Below, one piece after another: positions 226 to 62,923 of a stretch of DNA of 64,000 bases. Source of the DNA: Macrostomum hystrix. Taxonomy: Eukaryota; Animalia; Platyhelminthes. Each line of letters begins with the position of its first letter. Within the stretch, counting starts at the first letter, position 1. The stretch spans positions 13,082,001 to 13,146,000 of the forward strand of contig CATNEN010000007.1 of assembly GCA_950097015.1 (NCBI GenBank), given 5' to 3'. The notes beneath the pieces are model-generated. The model did no database searches. It worked only from the letters and a program-made list of their open reading frames with translations, and was not told the DNA's origin. The translations under genes and the position numbers were made by a program.

Positions 226-3200
226 GAGCCCTGACAATCTTGCAGGCGTCCTCGGTCTCATCATCCCCGTAGTCGCAGTCGTAGAATCCATCGCACACCT
301 GGTCCATGGAGAGGCACCTGTGGGGTTCAGGTTTGCAGTATTTGATGATGATTTGGTTCCAGATGAAATATCACTAATAAGCCACTGAGCGCAAATTACT
401 TGTGGACTTTCTTGCAGTAGAACTGCTGGCTTGTGCAGGTGTCTGCAATGCGTAGCGCATTTATTTAGTACAGAGGAACACATGAGCTTGCAATTGGCTA
501 ACCCATTTGAGAGTCAAGTGACTCACAGTTCCTACAGAAGGTTTCGTCCTCGTCCTCCTTGCCCACGCAGTCGACATAGCCGTCACAGACCTGGCGCTCC
601 GCCACACAGCTAAACGAGCAGCGAGGAGATGAGTACATGAGTGAAACTTTTGTGAGGGGCGTGGCATTGACCCACTGACTCAGGATTCCCACTCAAGACC
701 TGGCATTGACCCACTGACTCAGGATTCACACTCAAGACCTGGCATTGACCCACTGACTCAGGATTCACACTCAAGACCTGGCATTGACCCACTGACTCAG
801 GATTCCCACCCAAGACCGGCATTGACCCACTGACTCAGGATTCACACCCAAGACCTGGCATTGACCCACTGACTCAGGATTCACACCCAAGACCCAGCAT
901 TGACCCACTGACTCAGGATTCACACCCAAGACCTGGCATTGACCCACTGACTCAGGATTCACACCCAAGACCTGGCATTGACCCACTGACTCAGGATTCA
1001 CACCCAAGACCTGGCATTGACCCACTGACTCAGGATTCACACCCAAGACCTGGCATTGACCCCTGCTCGCCCCCTGTCTCACACGGGCCGATAGCTGAGC
1101 ATGCTGGGGCAGAAAAAGTCCTCGGGCCGGTCGCACTCGTCGCTGTTAAATCCCGGCGCCATCTGCGGCCCGTCCTGCGGCTGCGGCGGCTGCTCCGAGC
1201 ACTGCCTGAGGCTGCAGTAGCCGAACACGTTGTTCTTGTTGTCCACCCAGCACCAGGGCTTCGCGTCGCCATCCGGGTTGCGGCAGAGGCCCTGCCCACT
1301 GAGACCGGCGTTCGGGTGCGTGTCCGGGTTGATCAGCTTATTTTCGCTCCACTGCTGGCATGGCGTGCCCTTGTCCGTCCTGTGGCGGGCGGCGGTGCTC
1401 ACACTGCACTTTAGCCGTAGCTTAGTTCCCGAGATCCAATCTGAACTTTTTTATGCGTCTTGTCCGGCTCTCCTACTACATCGATCTACTATCTCCAATC
1501 ACGTCTATTCTCTCAAATTTCATCTATTCTCTCCACCGAATCTATTCTCTCCACTTTCATACATTCTCTCCCCTTTCATACATTCTCTCCCCTTTCATAC
1601 ATTCTCTCCCCTTTCATGCATTCTCTCCCCTTTCATACATTCTCTCCCCTTTCATACATTCTCTCCCCTTTCATGCATTCTCTCCCCTTTCATACATTCT
1701 CACCCCTTTCATACATTCTCTCCCCTTTCATACATTCTCTCCCCTTTCATACATTCTCTCCCCTTTCATACATTCTCACCCCTTTCATACATTCTCTCCC
1801 CTTTCATGCATTCTCTCCCCTTTCATACATTCTCTCCCCTTTCATACATTCTCTCCACTTTCATACATTCTCTCCACTTTCATACATTCTCTCCCCTTTC
1901 ATGCATTCTCTCCCCTTTCATACATTCTCTCCCCTTTCATACATTCTCTCCACTTTCATACATTCTCTCCCCTTTCATACATTCTCTCCCCTTTCATACA
2001 TTCTCTCCACTTTCATACATTCTCTCCACTTTCATACATTCTCTCCCCTTTCATGCATTCTCTCCCCTTTCATACATTCTCTCCCCTTTCATACATTCTC
2101 TCCACTTTCATACATTCTCTCCCCTTTCATACATTCTCTCCCCTTTCATACATTCTCTCCACTTTCATACATTCTCTCCACTTTCATACATTCTCTCCCC
2201 TTTCATACATTCTCTCCCCTTTCATACATTCTCTCCACTTTCATACATTCTCTCCCCTTTCATACATTCTCTCCCCTTTCATACATTCTCTCCCCTTTCA
2301 TACATTCTCTCCCCTTTCATGCATTCTCTCCCCTTTCATACATTCTCTCCCCTTTCATACATTTTCTCCACTTTCATACATTCTCTCCCCTTTCATACAT
2401 TCTCTTCCCTTTCATACATTCTCTCCACTTTCATACATTCTCTCCACTTTCATACATTCTCTCCCCTTTCATACATTCTCTCCCCTTTCATACATTCTCT
2501 CCACTTTCATACATTCTCTCCCCTTTCATACATTCTCTCCCCTTTCATACATTCTCTCCCCTTTCATACATTCTCTCCACTTTCATACATTCTCTCCACT
2601 TTCATACATTCTCTCCCCTTACATACATTCTCTCCACTTTCATACATTCTCTCCCCTTTCATACATTCTCTCCCCTTTCATACATTCTCTCCACTTTCAT
2701 ACATTCTCTCCACTTTCATACATTCTCTCCCCTTTCATACATTCTCTCCCCTTTCATACATTCTCTCCACTTTCATACATTCTCTCCCCTTTCATACATT
2801 CTCTATTATCTCCACCGAATCTATTCTCTCCACCGAATCTATTCTCTCCACCGAATCTATTCTCTCCACCGAATCTATTCTCTCCACCGAATCTATTCTC
2901 TCCACCGAATCTATTCTCTCCACCGAATCTATTCTCTCCACCGAATCTATTCTCTCTACCGAATCTATTCTCTCCGCGCACCTGGCGGCGAGTCCGCGGT
3001 ACTCGGTGCCCTTGCCGTCGTAGCAGTCGGTGCTGCCCACAGCCAGCTTCTGACAGACGAATGGCAGGCGAGTCTTGCAGCTGACGTTGTCCCACCAGAA
3101 ATAGTTCACGTCCACGTCTCGCCCAGTGCGCAGATGCTGGAACAGCTTCGACATGGCGATGCAGGAGCGCTTCAGCGGGTCTCCGGCGGGCCGGGCGTCC

Positions 3201-57164: not shown

Positions 57165-57874
57165 TGCAATCGCTTTTGGAGCTAATGTAGCGCTCACTTG
57201 ATGTTTTGAATAGGCTCAGAGCTTTTATATTAGCGAGAGTGGGATTAAAATGCTTAGCAAAAATATCTGTCACTAATTTCATGGCCATGCCCACTGATTC
57301 GCTCCTTGATGCGCATTGCTTGGTTGTCCTTGTTCGTCTCTGCTCTGGCTCATTAAGCTAGCTTTGATTCACGAGCTGCCGGCTGGTGGCCCAACATTAG
57401 GTACTCTTTTTTCTCTTTCCGAGAGCTTGCTGCTTGCTCTTTTTTATCTCTCCGAATGCTTGCTAGGACCAGCAGGTGCTGATTTTTATAATTGCATTGT
57501 GCAAATTCGAAACGACCTTTAAGAAGTCGTCCCACCTGACCGAAACCGTCCGCATCTCCTTTTCATTTTCCACGTCTATTTATTTACCTGAATACCTGAG
57601 TGTGATTCAGCTCCTTATTTACTGGCCATGCCGTGAAAACTCCTAAATACAATGATTGCCTTGCTGTGCAAGCTGGAGGGCGGGTTTCTGTGCTTGCTTC
57701 ACGGGTGCCACAGAACTTTTATTGCACTCCTGCGTGTAGTTGGCTATGAAACGAATCGATGCTATGCTCTTTAGCTTGACTGGAATTTGTCTTAAATCAA
57801 TGATAACAAGCATTGCATCGCCTGGCAGAGCCTACCTACTACCCACATTTAGTGTACTACCTCTGTTCCTTCTG

Positions 57875-58030
57875 CGAGCCACCTACTACCCCCAGTTCAC
57901 TGAGGAGCCACCTACTACCCCAGTTCACTGAGCGAGCCACCTACTACCCCCAGTTCACTGAGCGAGCCACCTACTACCCCAGTTCACTGAGCGAGCCACC
58001 TACTACCCCAGTTCACTGAGCGAGCCACCT
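57875..58030. repeat. 29-30-bp minisatellite, ~5 copies
   Basis: Unit GAGCGAGCCACCTACTACCCCAGTTCACT. Confidence 0.9.
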
Positions 58031-58437
58031 TTCCCTTGTTCTATTCGTTGTTTCAGCTACGGTTTACTGACATTCTGTGAAATTCAAGACACTCTCATAG
58101 GTCTACGAGTCTACGAGTCATAGAGCTCGAGTAATTCACTTTTTTGTGCGCACAAAATAACAAAACATTTGTGTGCAAACCAAGCAAAGATTCTTAATAA
58201 AGTTATGTGCGCGGGGGTTAAGGTTTCGTTCTGAAGATATACAATAATAGAAAATGAAAGAATAGTTACTTGGAGATTATGATCTAAAACTGGGGCTTAG
58301 TAAGCTAGTAATATCAGTTGCGTTAATACATTGCATTTGGGTCCACGCAGTCCATACTGTCTTTAAGTGTAGTCATTTGCGGGAAGCCTTTCCGCCTGCA
58401 TTGAAGACGCTTAATTTTTTAAGTAAAGTAAATTCAT

Positions 58438-61400
58438 TTACTGCGGCCCTGAAGTCAAATTCCTACGCAGAAGCTTTAGAAGGTCCTCAGCCAGCACCTC
58501 CCTGCGATCTTCTGAGATTCCATGAGACTCTTTGCAAAAGCCATCGCAATCTTCCCATTCAATAACCTTCACGTGGCGATGCTTCTTGCAATACTTCTTT
58601 AAGCCCCTTCCGAACTCATTCAACATGTCACTGACTTGGTCCTGGTTCACCAGGCCGATGAAGCCCAACTCCAGCTGCCGGTGCAGATATGAAAACTGTC
58701 CAGGAACTTCAAAAGCCAGCCTGACGTCTTCCCAGACCCAGACTTTGTAATCGTAAGTCCTGTCGTTCGATCCGGTGAAATTCTGCTTGGCTAGCACAGC
58801 ACCGTTGGCTTCCAGACAGCGCTGTAGCGTTGCAGGATCAGGATAGCGACTGCTAGTTGGCAGGACCAAGAAATACGGAGGGCTAAATGGTATCTCCTGG
58901 CCCTGGCCCACCTTTCTCCTCAGGTCTGAAAGCAATTGATTTTATGTCAGGGATTCCATAAATTTTATTTAGCTTGAGCAGTTACACTCGCATCACCTCG
59001 CAGGTTCATCGGGTTCAGTTTCTAAACCATGAAACAGTTCCTTTACCCCAATGAAACACTTTTCGAATGCAATCTACATTTTCAGATGTTCTTCGATATG
59101 TCACATGCAGTCTCTAGCCAGCGATTTTCTTACCCTCTTCCATCTTGTCCACAAAGCCGCAGCATATATTGGCGGTCAGGACTGTAGTCATTGACATCAG
59201 TGGGAAAACGTCTTCAACCCTCAGGCAGTTAGCGTCTGTAAGGTCTGAAATTTGGTATTGAGTAATGTCTTTCGAAGGTTTTTCAGTCAGTTGAGCTGAT
59301 AACAAAAATACTTTACTCAATGAAAATTTATAATTCTTGCGAGTATTAGTGAAAAATAGACTTACGAAGGTCCGTAAAAACGTCATCAAGAGTAATTTGT
59401 CTTGGCACAACTGCTAGGTTGGCAATTTGGTAGGCAGGACTCTGGTTGGACAAACTCGGTACTTGCTTGACGCAGCAATACGGCAAATGTTTTAAGTAAT
59501 CCGGCAACAGATCGTGGATGTCAACCTCATCTCTGGCATGTCCCACAATGATCACGGAAATGCAGCATTCGCCGCTGACATTCATCTGCAGTGTTCAGAT
59601 AGCACCAACTGGCCTAAAAGTATTGAAGAATCTCAAAAACAAAAAATTAAGCAAATAACTACCTTGGCTGCCGCGGATTTAAAATCGCAATCGCGCTCAT
59701 TCTCTTCCAACACAAATACGATTCTGCGAAACTGACTGATGTCCTCTTGCGACATGCGTTCTCTGGCGGCCAGCAGCTTGTACCGACCCTTAAACAGCCT
59801 TTCAAGTGACATTAAAACTGCCGACTTTTGATCAAATTCAACCAAAGAACTGCCCATTTTCACTAACATGTATGAGTCATCAGCAGTTGCTGATTTTCCA
59901 CTGGATAGAAGCTGGATCTGAGTTTTATCACAATACTTCTGAACCTCTTCTTCCAGGCGCTCTTGAAGAGCCTCGGGACTCGCCACCTCAAGCAGCTCCA
60001 CTCGCTTTCCCACTTCGCTATCTGCGTTAGTTTCCTCAAAAAGTAGCTCAGAAAACTGTGGGTGGTAGTGAATGAGCTTCAGATCTTCTTTAAACTGTTG
60101 AAATATGCTTGCTCTGAGCCCACACGTATCTCCTTGCTGTTCTTTGATGTCCATTTTTTGTATGTTGAAAATTGGAGAAGCCCAGTCCGCAAAAAGAAGC
60201 GCGTGCGTTGGGCCGGAAGGGGCACCACTCCTCAGCTCTATCAAATAGATAAATACTTTCCTTTCGTAGTCCTCGCATGTGAATGTGAGTTCGTTCTTTT
60301 TCACGCATCCAGGAAACAGTTCCACAGGGTTAATCGATTGACTCAGTTGTTCCGGAAGAAGTACGAAGTACTTTTTTACTACGATGATGCTGGCCGAGGG
60401 CACAGTAATTCCCATGTCAGCCAGCGCTCTCGTACTAAGCGCGTCCCCTTCATACAAAGCACTGCTAACCCGAGCGTCAAGGTTGGGCACAACGAGGCGC
60501 AGGAATGTGGACGCGAGGTTCCATGCAAAACTGCTGCCTGTGCTCTCAAAGATCTTTGTGTCTAAAATTTTGCGTCAGTGACAGAAAGGATAAGCTAAAA
60601 TTTGTAACAGTTAAACATTGGGTAGCTTGGGTAGGTGAGTGCTTGCTGATATAAGTGTGCCAAGGATTTGCTGTATATACTTCGTGCAAGAAATCTACGC
60701 AAGTAAGATTTTTTGGAAGCCTCTACTGGACAGCCACCAACTTTGCGAAAGCCAGTTTTTAAACTTCATTTGCAGGGTTGTTTCAGACTAAATCAATAGT
60801 TGCTTTTTCAGTATTTCGATGCGTCAACACGTACGCATGCATTTACATGACGCTGACATGGACGACACTATGGCTACCAAACTGCCTTTTCCTGCTTGCC
60901 TTGTCAATCTCATTAGAGCTATTTGTGCGGAGCTACTCTGTGAAAATTCCTCACTGCAGACAAGCGGATATTCTTCTCCGCTGGAGATGTACTTCATCAT
61001 TTAAAATAAAACAGTAAGATCTCCCTATATTGAGTCAGATTTTTCCTGCAGAAAAAATCTATAATGTTTCGGTGGCATCGGAATCGGAATTTTTTCTACG
61101 AAGTTAGAAAGACTTAAGCGAACATTGAACTACTCACCCTGTTGCTGCTGAGGGTTGAGACCCTCAATAACTGCTCTGGCTAGATCTCTTAGCTTTCGTT
61201 CATTGTCTTCTCCAGTCAGCTTAACAACTGATTTAAAGAGGTCGCGCACCCTCGGATGTTGCAGAAGTTCGCGCGGATTCTCCTCCAGTTGAGTCCGGGA
61301 GGCGAAGTTGTCCACCACATGCACGCGACGAGTGCTATTAGATACGCGCTGCAATTATTTTTGGGGCTGTATAAAAGGAACGAATGGCAGTATGGCAGAA

Positions 61401-62775
61401 AGGCAGTATGGCAGAAAAAAGAAAATTCAGGTGAAGGATGAACAATATGCTGATTCGTATTTTATATTAGACATTTTCCTCCGTTCGGCTCGCCTTTTAG
61501 AGGTGCCATTAAGATATTGATGTACTTAGCTTAAAAGCGACTCTTAAATCACCGTAGTATATGCAATTAGAGAATTTAGTTAAGCTTTTAAATTTATGCC
61601 CAAACAGGCAATATAAACTCAGTAAACTCACAAAAGAAAGTCTCTCTCAAGCAATATTATTCACAAACCAATGCCAATCATTACCCTTTTCATTGTCAGC
61701 AAAAGAAGCGGTCGAATGTATGCGGGTGGCAGCTGGCAAGCAATATTATTCACAAACCAATGCCAATCATTACCCTTTTCATTGTCAGCAAAAGAAGCGG
61801 TCGAATGTATGCGGGTGGCAGCTGGCAAGCAATAGTATTCACAAACCAATGCCAATCATTACCCTTTTCATTGTCAGCAAAAGAAGCGGTCGAATGTATG
61901 CGGGTGGCAGCTGGCAAGCAATAGTATTCACAAACCAATGCCAATCATTACCCTTTTCATTGTCAGCAAAAGAAGCGGTCGAATGTATGCGGGTGGCAGC
62001 TGGCAAGCAATAGTATTCACAAACCAATGCCAATCATTACCCTTTTCATTGTCAGCAAAAGAAGCGGTCGAATGTATGCGGGTGGCAGCTGGCAAGCAAT
62101 AGTATTCACAAACCAATGCCAATCATTACCCTTTTCATTGTCAGCAAAAGAAGCGGTCGAATGTATGCGGGTGGCAGCTGGCAAGCAATAGTATTCACAA
62201 ACCAATGCCAATCATTACCCTTTTCATTGTCAGCAAAAGAAGCGGTCGAATGTATGCGGGTGGCAGCTGGTTAAACACTAGCACGATGGCGTCAGCTGTG
62301 AATACCGATTCCACTACGCTTTTCCAGTCATTGAGATTTTCCGAGGTGGGTAGGACCTCAACTCTGCGATCTTCTTCTATGTTGCTCGCAGCTGGCACTC
62401 CAGCTTCACCAGCCTCCTTAATATACCTTTCAAGATCTGCGCTGGCCTGGCTCCTGCTTCCGATTACAATCAGAGAGACTGTCGCGCAACTTTCAGAATC
62501 TGAAATTTTTAATTTGTCGCTGTGTTGTCGAATACGTTTTTCTTAAATTAGAATATAATACACAGTTTTAGTTAAAACCAGCACCTTATCAGCGTGCACA
62601 AAAATTCTAATAAGTATTTGTAACTCGGCAGCTAGCGGCAAGAAAGTGTTTGCTTGACAGCCTAGCAGTTCGAAGAACAGCACCATCTCAGAACCTTACC
62701 GAAAGGCGTTCTAAATGGAGTGACCGTCGCTCCGATTCCTTTCAGTGAGTAGGACTGTCCTTCCCGCAGCGGCAT
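58438..62775 (-). CDS. STING: Divergent tandem STING protein: TIR-like-STING-TIR-like-STING, no transmembrane segment, 778 aa
   Basis: Exons 62775-62700, 62499-62219, 61348-61138, 60561-59663, 59585-59366, 59295-59134, 58925-58438 (2337 nt, all GT-AG, phases match, no stops). Domain 1: FAWNLASTFLRLVVPNLDARV / KYFVLLP / DWASPIFNIQKM. Domain 2: GFVDKMEEDLRRKV / YFLVLPTSSRYP / GSNDRTYDYKVW / FGRGL / KVIEWED. These align in order with human STING [69 protein letters not shown] (recalled, aligned by eye). Confidence 0.75.
61649..62270. repeat. 89-bp tandem repeat, 7 copies, spanning the exon-2 3' end and donor of the STING-like gene
   Basis: Donors GTAATG at 62218, 62129, 62040, 61951, 61862, 61773, 61684. 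Confidence 0.95.
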
Positions 62776-62923
62776 TTCTGAAAAATTTATTCAATCAAGC
62801 TCTGTGTGAGTTTCGCAAACGGAGTTCATTGCATAATATGAGGTACCGGGTCTTTAGCTGTATGCAGTCCTAGTTGGCTCTGACAAACTCTTTTATCAGA
62901 TCCTTATTATCTAGTAAATTTGT

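Follow-up and report, generated by a model that had tools for sequence, protein, structure and literature searches.

A soluble Macrostomum protein predicted to carry two animal-type STING ligand-binding folds in one chain

The present analysis concerns a stretch of 64,000 nucleotides from the flatworm Macrostomum hystrix (contig CATNEN010000007.1, positions 13,082,001 to 13,146,000; referred to as the window), whose minus strand harbours a gene of seven exons between positions 62775 and 58438. We consider it probable that this gene encodes a soluble protein in which an alpha/beta segment, a STING domain, a further alpha/beta segment and a further STING domain follow one another, that both STING domains adopt the ligand-binding domain (LBD) fold of animal STING, and that the two of them act together through a pocket formed in cis, a mechanism which we infer. 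The arrangement resembles the one proposed earlier from the bare sequence (hereafter the sequence-only reading), which had described the protein as TIR-STING-TIR-STING.

Two predicted STING folds

The assignment of both STING domains is based on structure prediction. A template-free AlphaFold2 model of exon 4 was calculated from an alignment of 18 family sequences. When this model was compared with the PDB by means of Foldseek, at least 141 matches at E ≤ 1e-3 were obtained, all of those listed being STING, with an oyster STING (8ydn, E 1.5e-6) as the best one. When 48,161 chains were searched exhaustively with VIA-align, STING chains likewise took all of the top 15 ranks (Z 10.8 to 6.2), animal STINGs being aligned over 155-171 residues with Z 9.1-10.8 as against 6.2-7.6 for the bacterial ones. 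The model of exon 7, also template-free, built from family sequences and comprising this exon alone without the alpha-1 helix, reached a predicted local distance difference test score (pLDDT) of 78 and a predicted TM-score (pTM) of 0.75. Its listed Foldseek matches are all STING as well (best E 1e-5). VIA-align superimposes it on the coral STING 8efm with Z 10.6 and a root-mean-square deviation (rmsd) of 2.6 Å over 125 residues; here, too, the top 15 chains are all STING, while the best unrelated chain reaches Z 5.1. The highest-ranking PDB matches are thus STING ligand-binding domains throughout, for the exon-4 model as well as for the exon-7 model. Both domains are therefore supported, and the two STING-like regions of the sequence-only reading withstand, exon by exon, the AlphaFold and Foldseek check which it had itself proposed.

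Sequence identity to solved STINGs amounts to 12-21% in the structural alignments of both domains, and the modelling supports the conclusion that each of them carries an animal-type STING ligand-binding fold which has diverged too far to be detected by Pfam. The animal rather than the bacterial type is indicated because animal STINGs score with Z 9-10.8 compared to 6-7.6 for bacterial ones and because paralogs of the gene match PF15009 (STING_LBD), never prok_STING (PF20300). The latter has no match in the genome at E ≤ 10, in a scan whose control was empty as well, and none among 11 family copies.

At the level of the family, the link to STING also emerges from sequence profiles. Of 11 family copies, seven match PF15009 with E values down to 4.8e-5, and in a six-frame scan of the genome the top score is 25.6 bits in relation to a cut-off of 27. 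A profile of these 11 copies was compared with all PDB sequences, and its 60 best matches are STING without exception (E from 1.1e-3), with the alignment limited to the alpha-1 helix; the alignment obtained by phmmer for the best paralog versus the PDB is confined to the same helix. In domain 1 this helix displays the motif A-W-x(5)-aromatic-L-R-L-x-x-P-x-L, of which A, W, F, L and P are invariant within the family, as is an A-S/x-P strand. Domain 2 possesses a family-invariant R-x-Y. The helix-like end of exon 6 reads A-N-x(4)-F, with A, N and F invariant across nine paralogs, and from its position and pattern we infer that this stretch (VLTANICCGFVDKMEE) represents a degenerate alpha-1 helix of STING domain 2. 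In human STING the ligand is contacted by Y167, R238, Y240, E260 and T263; judged from the sequence, an aromatic residue appears to be retained at the Y167 position of alpha-1 in both STING domains.

A number of observations weigh against this assignment. The window copy itself shows no match to PF15009, even at E ≤ 10, which leaves the Pfam check suggested by the sequence-only reading negative for this copy, and its exon pieces overall yield Pfam matches at chance level only. The exon-4 model is of moderate confidence only (pLDDT 69.6; Foldseek TM-score 0.55-0.60 at an rmsd of about 5 Å), and for exon 7 only one out of five models is confident (pLDDT 78 compared to 50-58). A profile of exon 7 retrieves nothing relevant among the PDB sequences and hence no link to STING, nor does its comparison with the exon-4 profile by hhalign become significant, although the short helix which is aligned in this comparison is the positionally equivalent one. 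Finally, as judged from the sequence and in human numbering, Y163 seems to be lost from alpha-1 of both STING domains and W161 from that of domain 2 as well. The expectation of the sequence-only reading that plain BLAST would probably miss the protein is in line with the empty Pfam result for the window copy and with a phmmer search which finds relatives in Macrostomum lignano alone.

Gene model and gene family

The seven exons, all with GT-AG borders, splice in phase to 778 codons plus stop (2337 nt) without any internal stop, and all 12 splice-site dinucleotides are canonical. The intact open reading frame of 778 residues described beforehand is thus reproduced, its length being matched exactly, and translation of all three minus frames of positions 58300-62900 recovered every motif quoted at that time at the place given for it. 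The coordinates are compiled in Table 1.

Table 1. Positions within the window of the exons, the predicted domains and the minisatellite
Feature	Position	Strand	Description
Exon 1	62700..62775	-	ATG at 62775; 25 codons plus 1 base; donor GT 62699-62698; in-frame stop just upstream
Exon 2	62219..62499	-	N-terminal alpha/beta segment, part 1 (LIVIGS ... AIVLVF ... TMKR); final 48 nt are minisatellite copy 1; borders in phase
Exon 3	61138..61348	-	N-terminal alpha/beta segment, part 2 (RVHVV ... LLQHPRV); acceptor phase 0, donor phase 1
Exon 4	59663..60561	-	899 nt; linker, predicted STING domain 1 and first half of the middle alpha/beta segment
Exon 5	59366..59585	-	Second half of the middle alpha/beta segment (SVIIVG ... 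LLPDYLKHLPY); in phase
Exon 6	59134..59295	-	Linker and putative degenerate alpha-1 helix of STING domain 2 (VLTANICCGFVDKMEE); in phase
Exon 7	58438..58925	-	Remainder of predicted STING domain 2, protein residues 618-778; coding to 58441, TAA 58440-58438
STING ligand-binding-domain fold no. 1 (predicted)	59921..60535	-	Protein residues ~199-403; starts with helix alpha-1 (SSFAWNLASTFLRLVVPNLDARV)
Middle alpha/beta segment, first half	59663..59884	-	beta-alpha-beta-alpha-beta-alpha in the AlphaFold model
STING domain 2 (predicted)	protein residues ~593-778	-	Exon 6 helix plus exon 7
89-bp minisatellite	61648..62270	.	7.0 copies, 99% matches; begins inside exon 2

Comparison of each exon by tblastn with 10-kb stretches around the paralogous loci reveals that exons 2 to 7 are each conserved as protein and in the same order, while the introns between them are not conserved. 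Exon 2, its final 20 residues included, is 43-54% identical to four paralogs on contig C2, and exon 3 shares 50-63% identity with its paralogs, LLQH being invariant. The first 49 residues of exon 5 are 50-54% identical to the C2 paralogs. The order of the exons is colinear with annotated M. lignano proteins. For exon 4, whose acceptor position is kept across the paralogs, an alternative acceptor at 60537 (24 nt further downstream, leading to 770 residues) was considered and rejected; the border at 60561 is preferred because the paralogs and the M. lignano proteins conserve both its position and the eight additional residues. A counterpart of the 25-residue exon 1 was sought at the paralogous loci and none was detectable; this exon appears to be the weakest and least certain one of the gene model. 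Within five family alignments the window copy retains every family-invariant residue, and the sequence evidence taken together describes a gene which is real and apparently intact.

In none of the exons is a transmembrane block present. The highest Kyte-Doolittle mean over 19 residues, 1.53, falls within a predicted beta strand, which agrees with the sequence-only reading on this point, and as judged from its sequence the encoded protein of 778 residues is soluble and devoid of a membrane anchor.

The unit of the minisatellite which overlaps the end of exon 2 consists of the last 48 coding bases of this exon, the GT donor and 41 bases of intron 2 ending in CAG. Its repetition creates seven identical exon-2 donor sites, and read-through of any unit meets a stop after seven codons. 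In four paralogs the last 20 residues of exon 2 are conserved immediately behind the remainder of the exon, which shows them to be real coding sequence and singles out donor number one of the identical seven as the homologous site. A further tandem repeat with a unit of 29 bp (5.4 copies, 96% matches) is located at positions 57874-58030, about 400 bp downstream of the stop codon of the gene.

The paralog search recommended by the sequence-only reading proved productive: within the 220-Mb genome the protein encoded by exon 4 has matches at twelve places besides its own, and at least 12 paralogous loci are present. A cluster on contig C2 (8.97-9.10 Mb) is 45-50% identical in the exon-4 protein, and more distant paralogs on C39 and C38 are 32-38% identical. 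The window gene stands alone on contig C7, apart from the C2 cluster, to which it is sister in a tree of STING domain 1, on a long branch; the branch of one other member, C2_9104k, is longer still. In the same tree the subfamilies on C39 each pair with M. lignano proteins. A phmmer search against 1.84 billion representative proteins returned only three relatives, all of them from M. lignano (PAA63807.1, PAA82216.1 and PAA82218.1; 32-39% identity). On the basis of these comparisons the gene belongs to a multigene family restricted to Macrostomum, within which its sister group is the tandem cluster on contig C2. The orthologue pairs formed by C39 members and M. lignano proteins are about 70% identical. 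In the UniProt clusters of the M. lignano relatives, some entries bear the automatic name “Stimulator of interferon genes protein”, others “SEFIR” or “Death domain-containing”, names which are not reproducible with Pfam.

Two features of individual family members may be added. Two near-identical tandem members on C39 (4249033-4249584 and 4253439-4253990) encode STING domain 1 together with alpha-1 of domain 2 in a single exon. The two STING parts are separated there by about 75 residues without a middle alpha/beta segment, which makes these genes a plain STING-STING variant; PAA82216.1 of M. lignano is the orthologue of this pair, with an identity of about 70%. In the copy at C2:8967306-8967882 the exon-4 match falls into two neighbouring pieces which lie in different frames (query residues 2-102 and 109-199, within open frames of 133 and 99 residues), and this copy is probably a frameshifted pseudogene.

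The alpha/beta segments and comparison with known STING proteins

The sequence-only reading had labelled both alpha/beta segments as TIR-like, a designation which is not supported by the profile and structure searches. Genome scans with Pfam TIR_2 and TIR at E ≤ 10 detect 48 and 18 places, respectively, none of which lies inside the window gene or any paralog locus, and by hmmscan no TIR is found in either the exon pieces or the relatives from M. lignano. The family profile of exon 2, when compared with PDB sequences including the chains of oyster TIR-STING, retrieves designed TIM barrels only and no TIR. ESM Atlas provides no usable match for exon 2, PADLOC matches are at chance level only and include no TIR, and a genome scan for SEFIR, run without a positive control, gave no match. 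According to VIA-align, the first half of the middle segment (model residues 213-291) is generically Rossmann- or flavodoxin-like with Z 5-6, the matches comprising periplasmic binding proteins, cobalamin-binding domains, receiver domains and Argonaute MID domains, and no TIR being present among the 50 matches listed. The Atlas model of the middle domain of an M. lignano relative is flavodoxin-like at a TM-score of 0.6, the model itself being poor (pLDDT 0.40). As the TIR domain itself has a flavodoxin-like fold, the segments may yet be TIR domains that have diverged very far. The N-terminal and the middle segment are each interrupted by a phase-0 intron at a comparable place. A comparison of the exon-2 profile with the tail of exon 4 by hhalign is not significant and does not link the two segments by sequence; because of this, a duplication of a whole alpha/beta-STING module is not demonstrated at the sequence level. 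The segments are best called alpha/beta with a flavodoxin-like pattern; their identity as TIR is not demonstrated, and it would be premature to ascribe NADase activity to them.

Elsewhere in the genome, ten strong TIR_2 matches (70-86 bits) are assembled within 41 kb on contig C38 (17955229-17995979), apparently as a unit repeated five times in tandem, either a pair of genes or one gene with two TIRs. The genuine TIR genes of this genome are therefore an enlarged group which has no relation to the STING family.

A class with two STING and two TIR domains has been listed for oyster in a paper from 2024 (PMC11103948). The oyster and the Macrostomum proteins have in common that they are soluble without transmembrane helices, contain animal-type STING with two STING domains per chain and have each of these preceded by an alpha/beta domain other than STING. 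The STING domain of 6wt7, a solved soluble TIR-STING, matches both of our models, with Z 9.8 and 9.7. In contrast to the Macrostomum segments, however, the oyster TIRs are recognisable by profile, and the identity is just 12-13%. Moreover, oysters possess cGAS-like receptors (cGLRs; PMC9980059) while in this genome none besides MAB21L1 was recognised.

With the canonical transmembrane STING of animals (human, PF15009) the window protein shares the ligand-binding fold, with Z up to 10.8, as well as the alpha-1 motif of domain 1. It differs in lacking the four-helix membrane domain and the vertebrate C-terminal tail, in remaining below the Pfam threshold and in comprising two LBDs per chain where the canonical protein forms a homodimer. 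The TIR-STING proteins of the bacterial cyclic oligonucleotide-based antiphage signalling system (CBASS), such as SfSTING (PDB 7un8), are likewise soluble fusions of an alpha/beta domain with STING and exhibit a related fold (Z 6.0-7.6), yet score lower than animal STINGs, and the window protein has no PF20300 signal and no recognisable TIR or NADase motif. The bacterial proteins contain a single STING domain per chain and reside in an operon with a cGAS/DncV-like nucleotidyltransferase (CD-NTase), for which there is no counterpart here. The uncharacterised M. lignano proteins belong to the same family and are colinear with exons 4, 6 and 7 and weakly with exon 5. None of them falls within the clade formed by the window gene and the C2 cluster, identity is limited to 32-39%, their N-terminal regions have no similarity to exons 2 and 3, and some lack the middle alpha/beta segment.

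Pathway context, mechanism and alternatives

The genome was also scanned for further components of a STING pathway. No PF15009 match above the cut-off, and hence no canonical STING, is present genome-wide; the three sub-threshold matches all originate from the soluble family. The Mab-21 family is represented by a single match (C24:4853213-4853761), the orthologue of MAB21L1 (E 2.8e-174 to PDB 5eog), which is 96% identical to its M. lignano counterpart and at most 74% identical to every other match listed. Together with the roughly 70% identity of the STING-family orthologue pairs, this marks the host as a species of Macrostomum distinct from M. lignano. The search for cGLR or cGAS-like enzymes advocated by the sequence-only reading thus ended with MAB21L1 alone: no other cGLR was recognised in the genome scan, and SMODS has no match in the genome. 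The absence of STING and synthase genes is only probable, since six-frame scans conducted exon by exon can miss diverged genes. The result agrees with the report that most platyhelminths have no cGLR beyond Mab21-like proteins (PMC9980059).

As to the mechanism, STING domains bind cyclic dinucleotides in the cleft between two protomers. Because the ligand is bound at this dimer interface and one chain can supply both halves of it, the two unequal STING domains of the Macrostomum protein would probably pair in cis and create one asymmetric pocket for a nucleotide second messenger. A complex prediction in which domain 1 was paired with exon 6 and exon 7, each of these as its own chain, gave a score of 0.00, which speaks neither for nor against such pairing. 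With MAB21L1 as the only cGLR recognised in the genome and no match for SMODS, the ligand would be of microbial origin or the product of a synthase which escapes recognition; the same idea has been put forward for eukaryotic STINGs without a CD-NTase, which are proposed to read exogenous nucleotides (PMC10732462). Binding would alter the association of the flanking alpha/beta segments and thereby pass the signal on, the simplest form being a ligand-dependent self-association of these segments. A more far-reaching version, which we put forward tentatively and consider doubtful, is that Macrostomum lost canonical transmembrane STING together with the cGLRs but retained and expanded a soluble single-chain “pseudo-dimer” STING, whose asymmetric pocket would sense microbial nucleotides or some other signal and which would signal via alpha/beta domains other than TIR. 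If true, this would be a STING pathway with neither the known upstream nor the known downstream partners.

A serious, albeit minority, possibility is that the STING folds no longer bind cyclic dinucleotides at all and operate as a neofunctionalised adaptor or scaffold, or as sensor of a different small molecule. The extreme divergence, with no Pfam match of the window copy and as little as 12-21% identity to solved STINGs, the changes at several pocket positions of alpha-1 and a genome without recognised cGLR or SMODS synthase would all accord with this view. The fold, however, is retained in both domains, and the family-invariant residues fall in elements typical of STING (alpha-1, the A-x-P strand and R-x-Y of domain 2). 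Multi-copy retention and conserved coding exons point to selection on function, and for STINGs lacking a host CD-NTase a role as readers of exogenous nucleotides has been proposed (PMC10732462). We regard it as unlikely that the protein is a genuine TIR-STING-TIR-STING of the bacterial or oyster type, in which oligomerisation driven by the ligand would switch on TIR NADase or TIR-adaptor signalling. While the alternating beta/alpha pattern, the flavodoxin-like middle domain of the relative, a fold shared with TIR, and the comparable phase-0 introns of both segments are compatible with such an architecture, Pfam TIR and TIR_2, which detect 18 and 48 other places, are silent in the gene and its paralogs. 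The exon-2 profile, ESM Atlas and PADLOC fail to produce a TIR either, the VIA-align matches are generic, hhalign does not connect the two segments, and the SEFIR scan, albeit without positive control, is empty.

That the gene might be a recently inactivated or unexpressed paralog, in other words a pseudogene which is still open, appears quite improbable to us. Its solitary position on contig C7, its long branch and the missing paralog support for exon 1 could be interpreted in this sense, as could the very young minisatellite which multiplied the exon-2 donor sevenfold and could disturb splicing. Yet 778 codons are open, the 12 splice dinucleotides are canonical, every family-invariant residue of the five alignments is kept, and the branch of the gene is shorter than that of C2_9104k, another member of the family. 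Hardly credible, finally, is the assumption that the resemblance to STING reflects chance or an artefact of modelling and that the gene is an unrelated orphan. Although the window copy is without a significant match to any sequence family and the models are moderately confident, with each of two independent template-free models STING chains occupy the first 15 ranks among 48,161 representatives, unrelated folds following at a clear distance, the 60 best PDB profile matches of the family are STING throughout, and seven of its 11 copies match PF15009. The reading as a soluble protein with two animal-type STING folds is the one we adopt.

With respect to novelty, STING has been stated to be lost in flatworms on the basis of Schistosoma (PMC4117786) and to be absent from Schmidtea (PMC13563047), and the sequence-only reading was right in giving this as the published view. 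No published report of a Macrostomum STING was found in the literature searched. The novelty claimed in the sequence-only reading is nevertheless overstated, given that the layout is already listed for oyster and that UniProt automatically labels some of the M. lignano relatives as STING. Contrary to the stated loss of cGAS and STING in flatworms, the early-branching genus Macrostomum, at least, keeps STING-fold proteins. What a STING domain senses when its host makes no known ligand thereby becomes a directly testable question in a tractable flatworm, as does the question of whether two STING domains per chain replace the usual homodimer.

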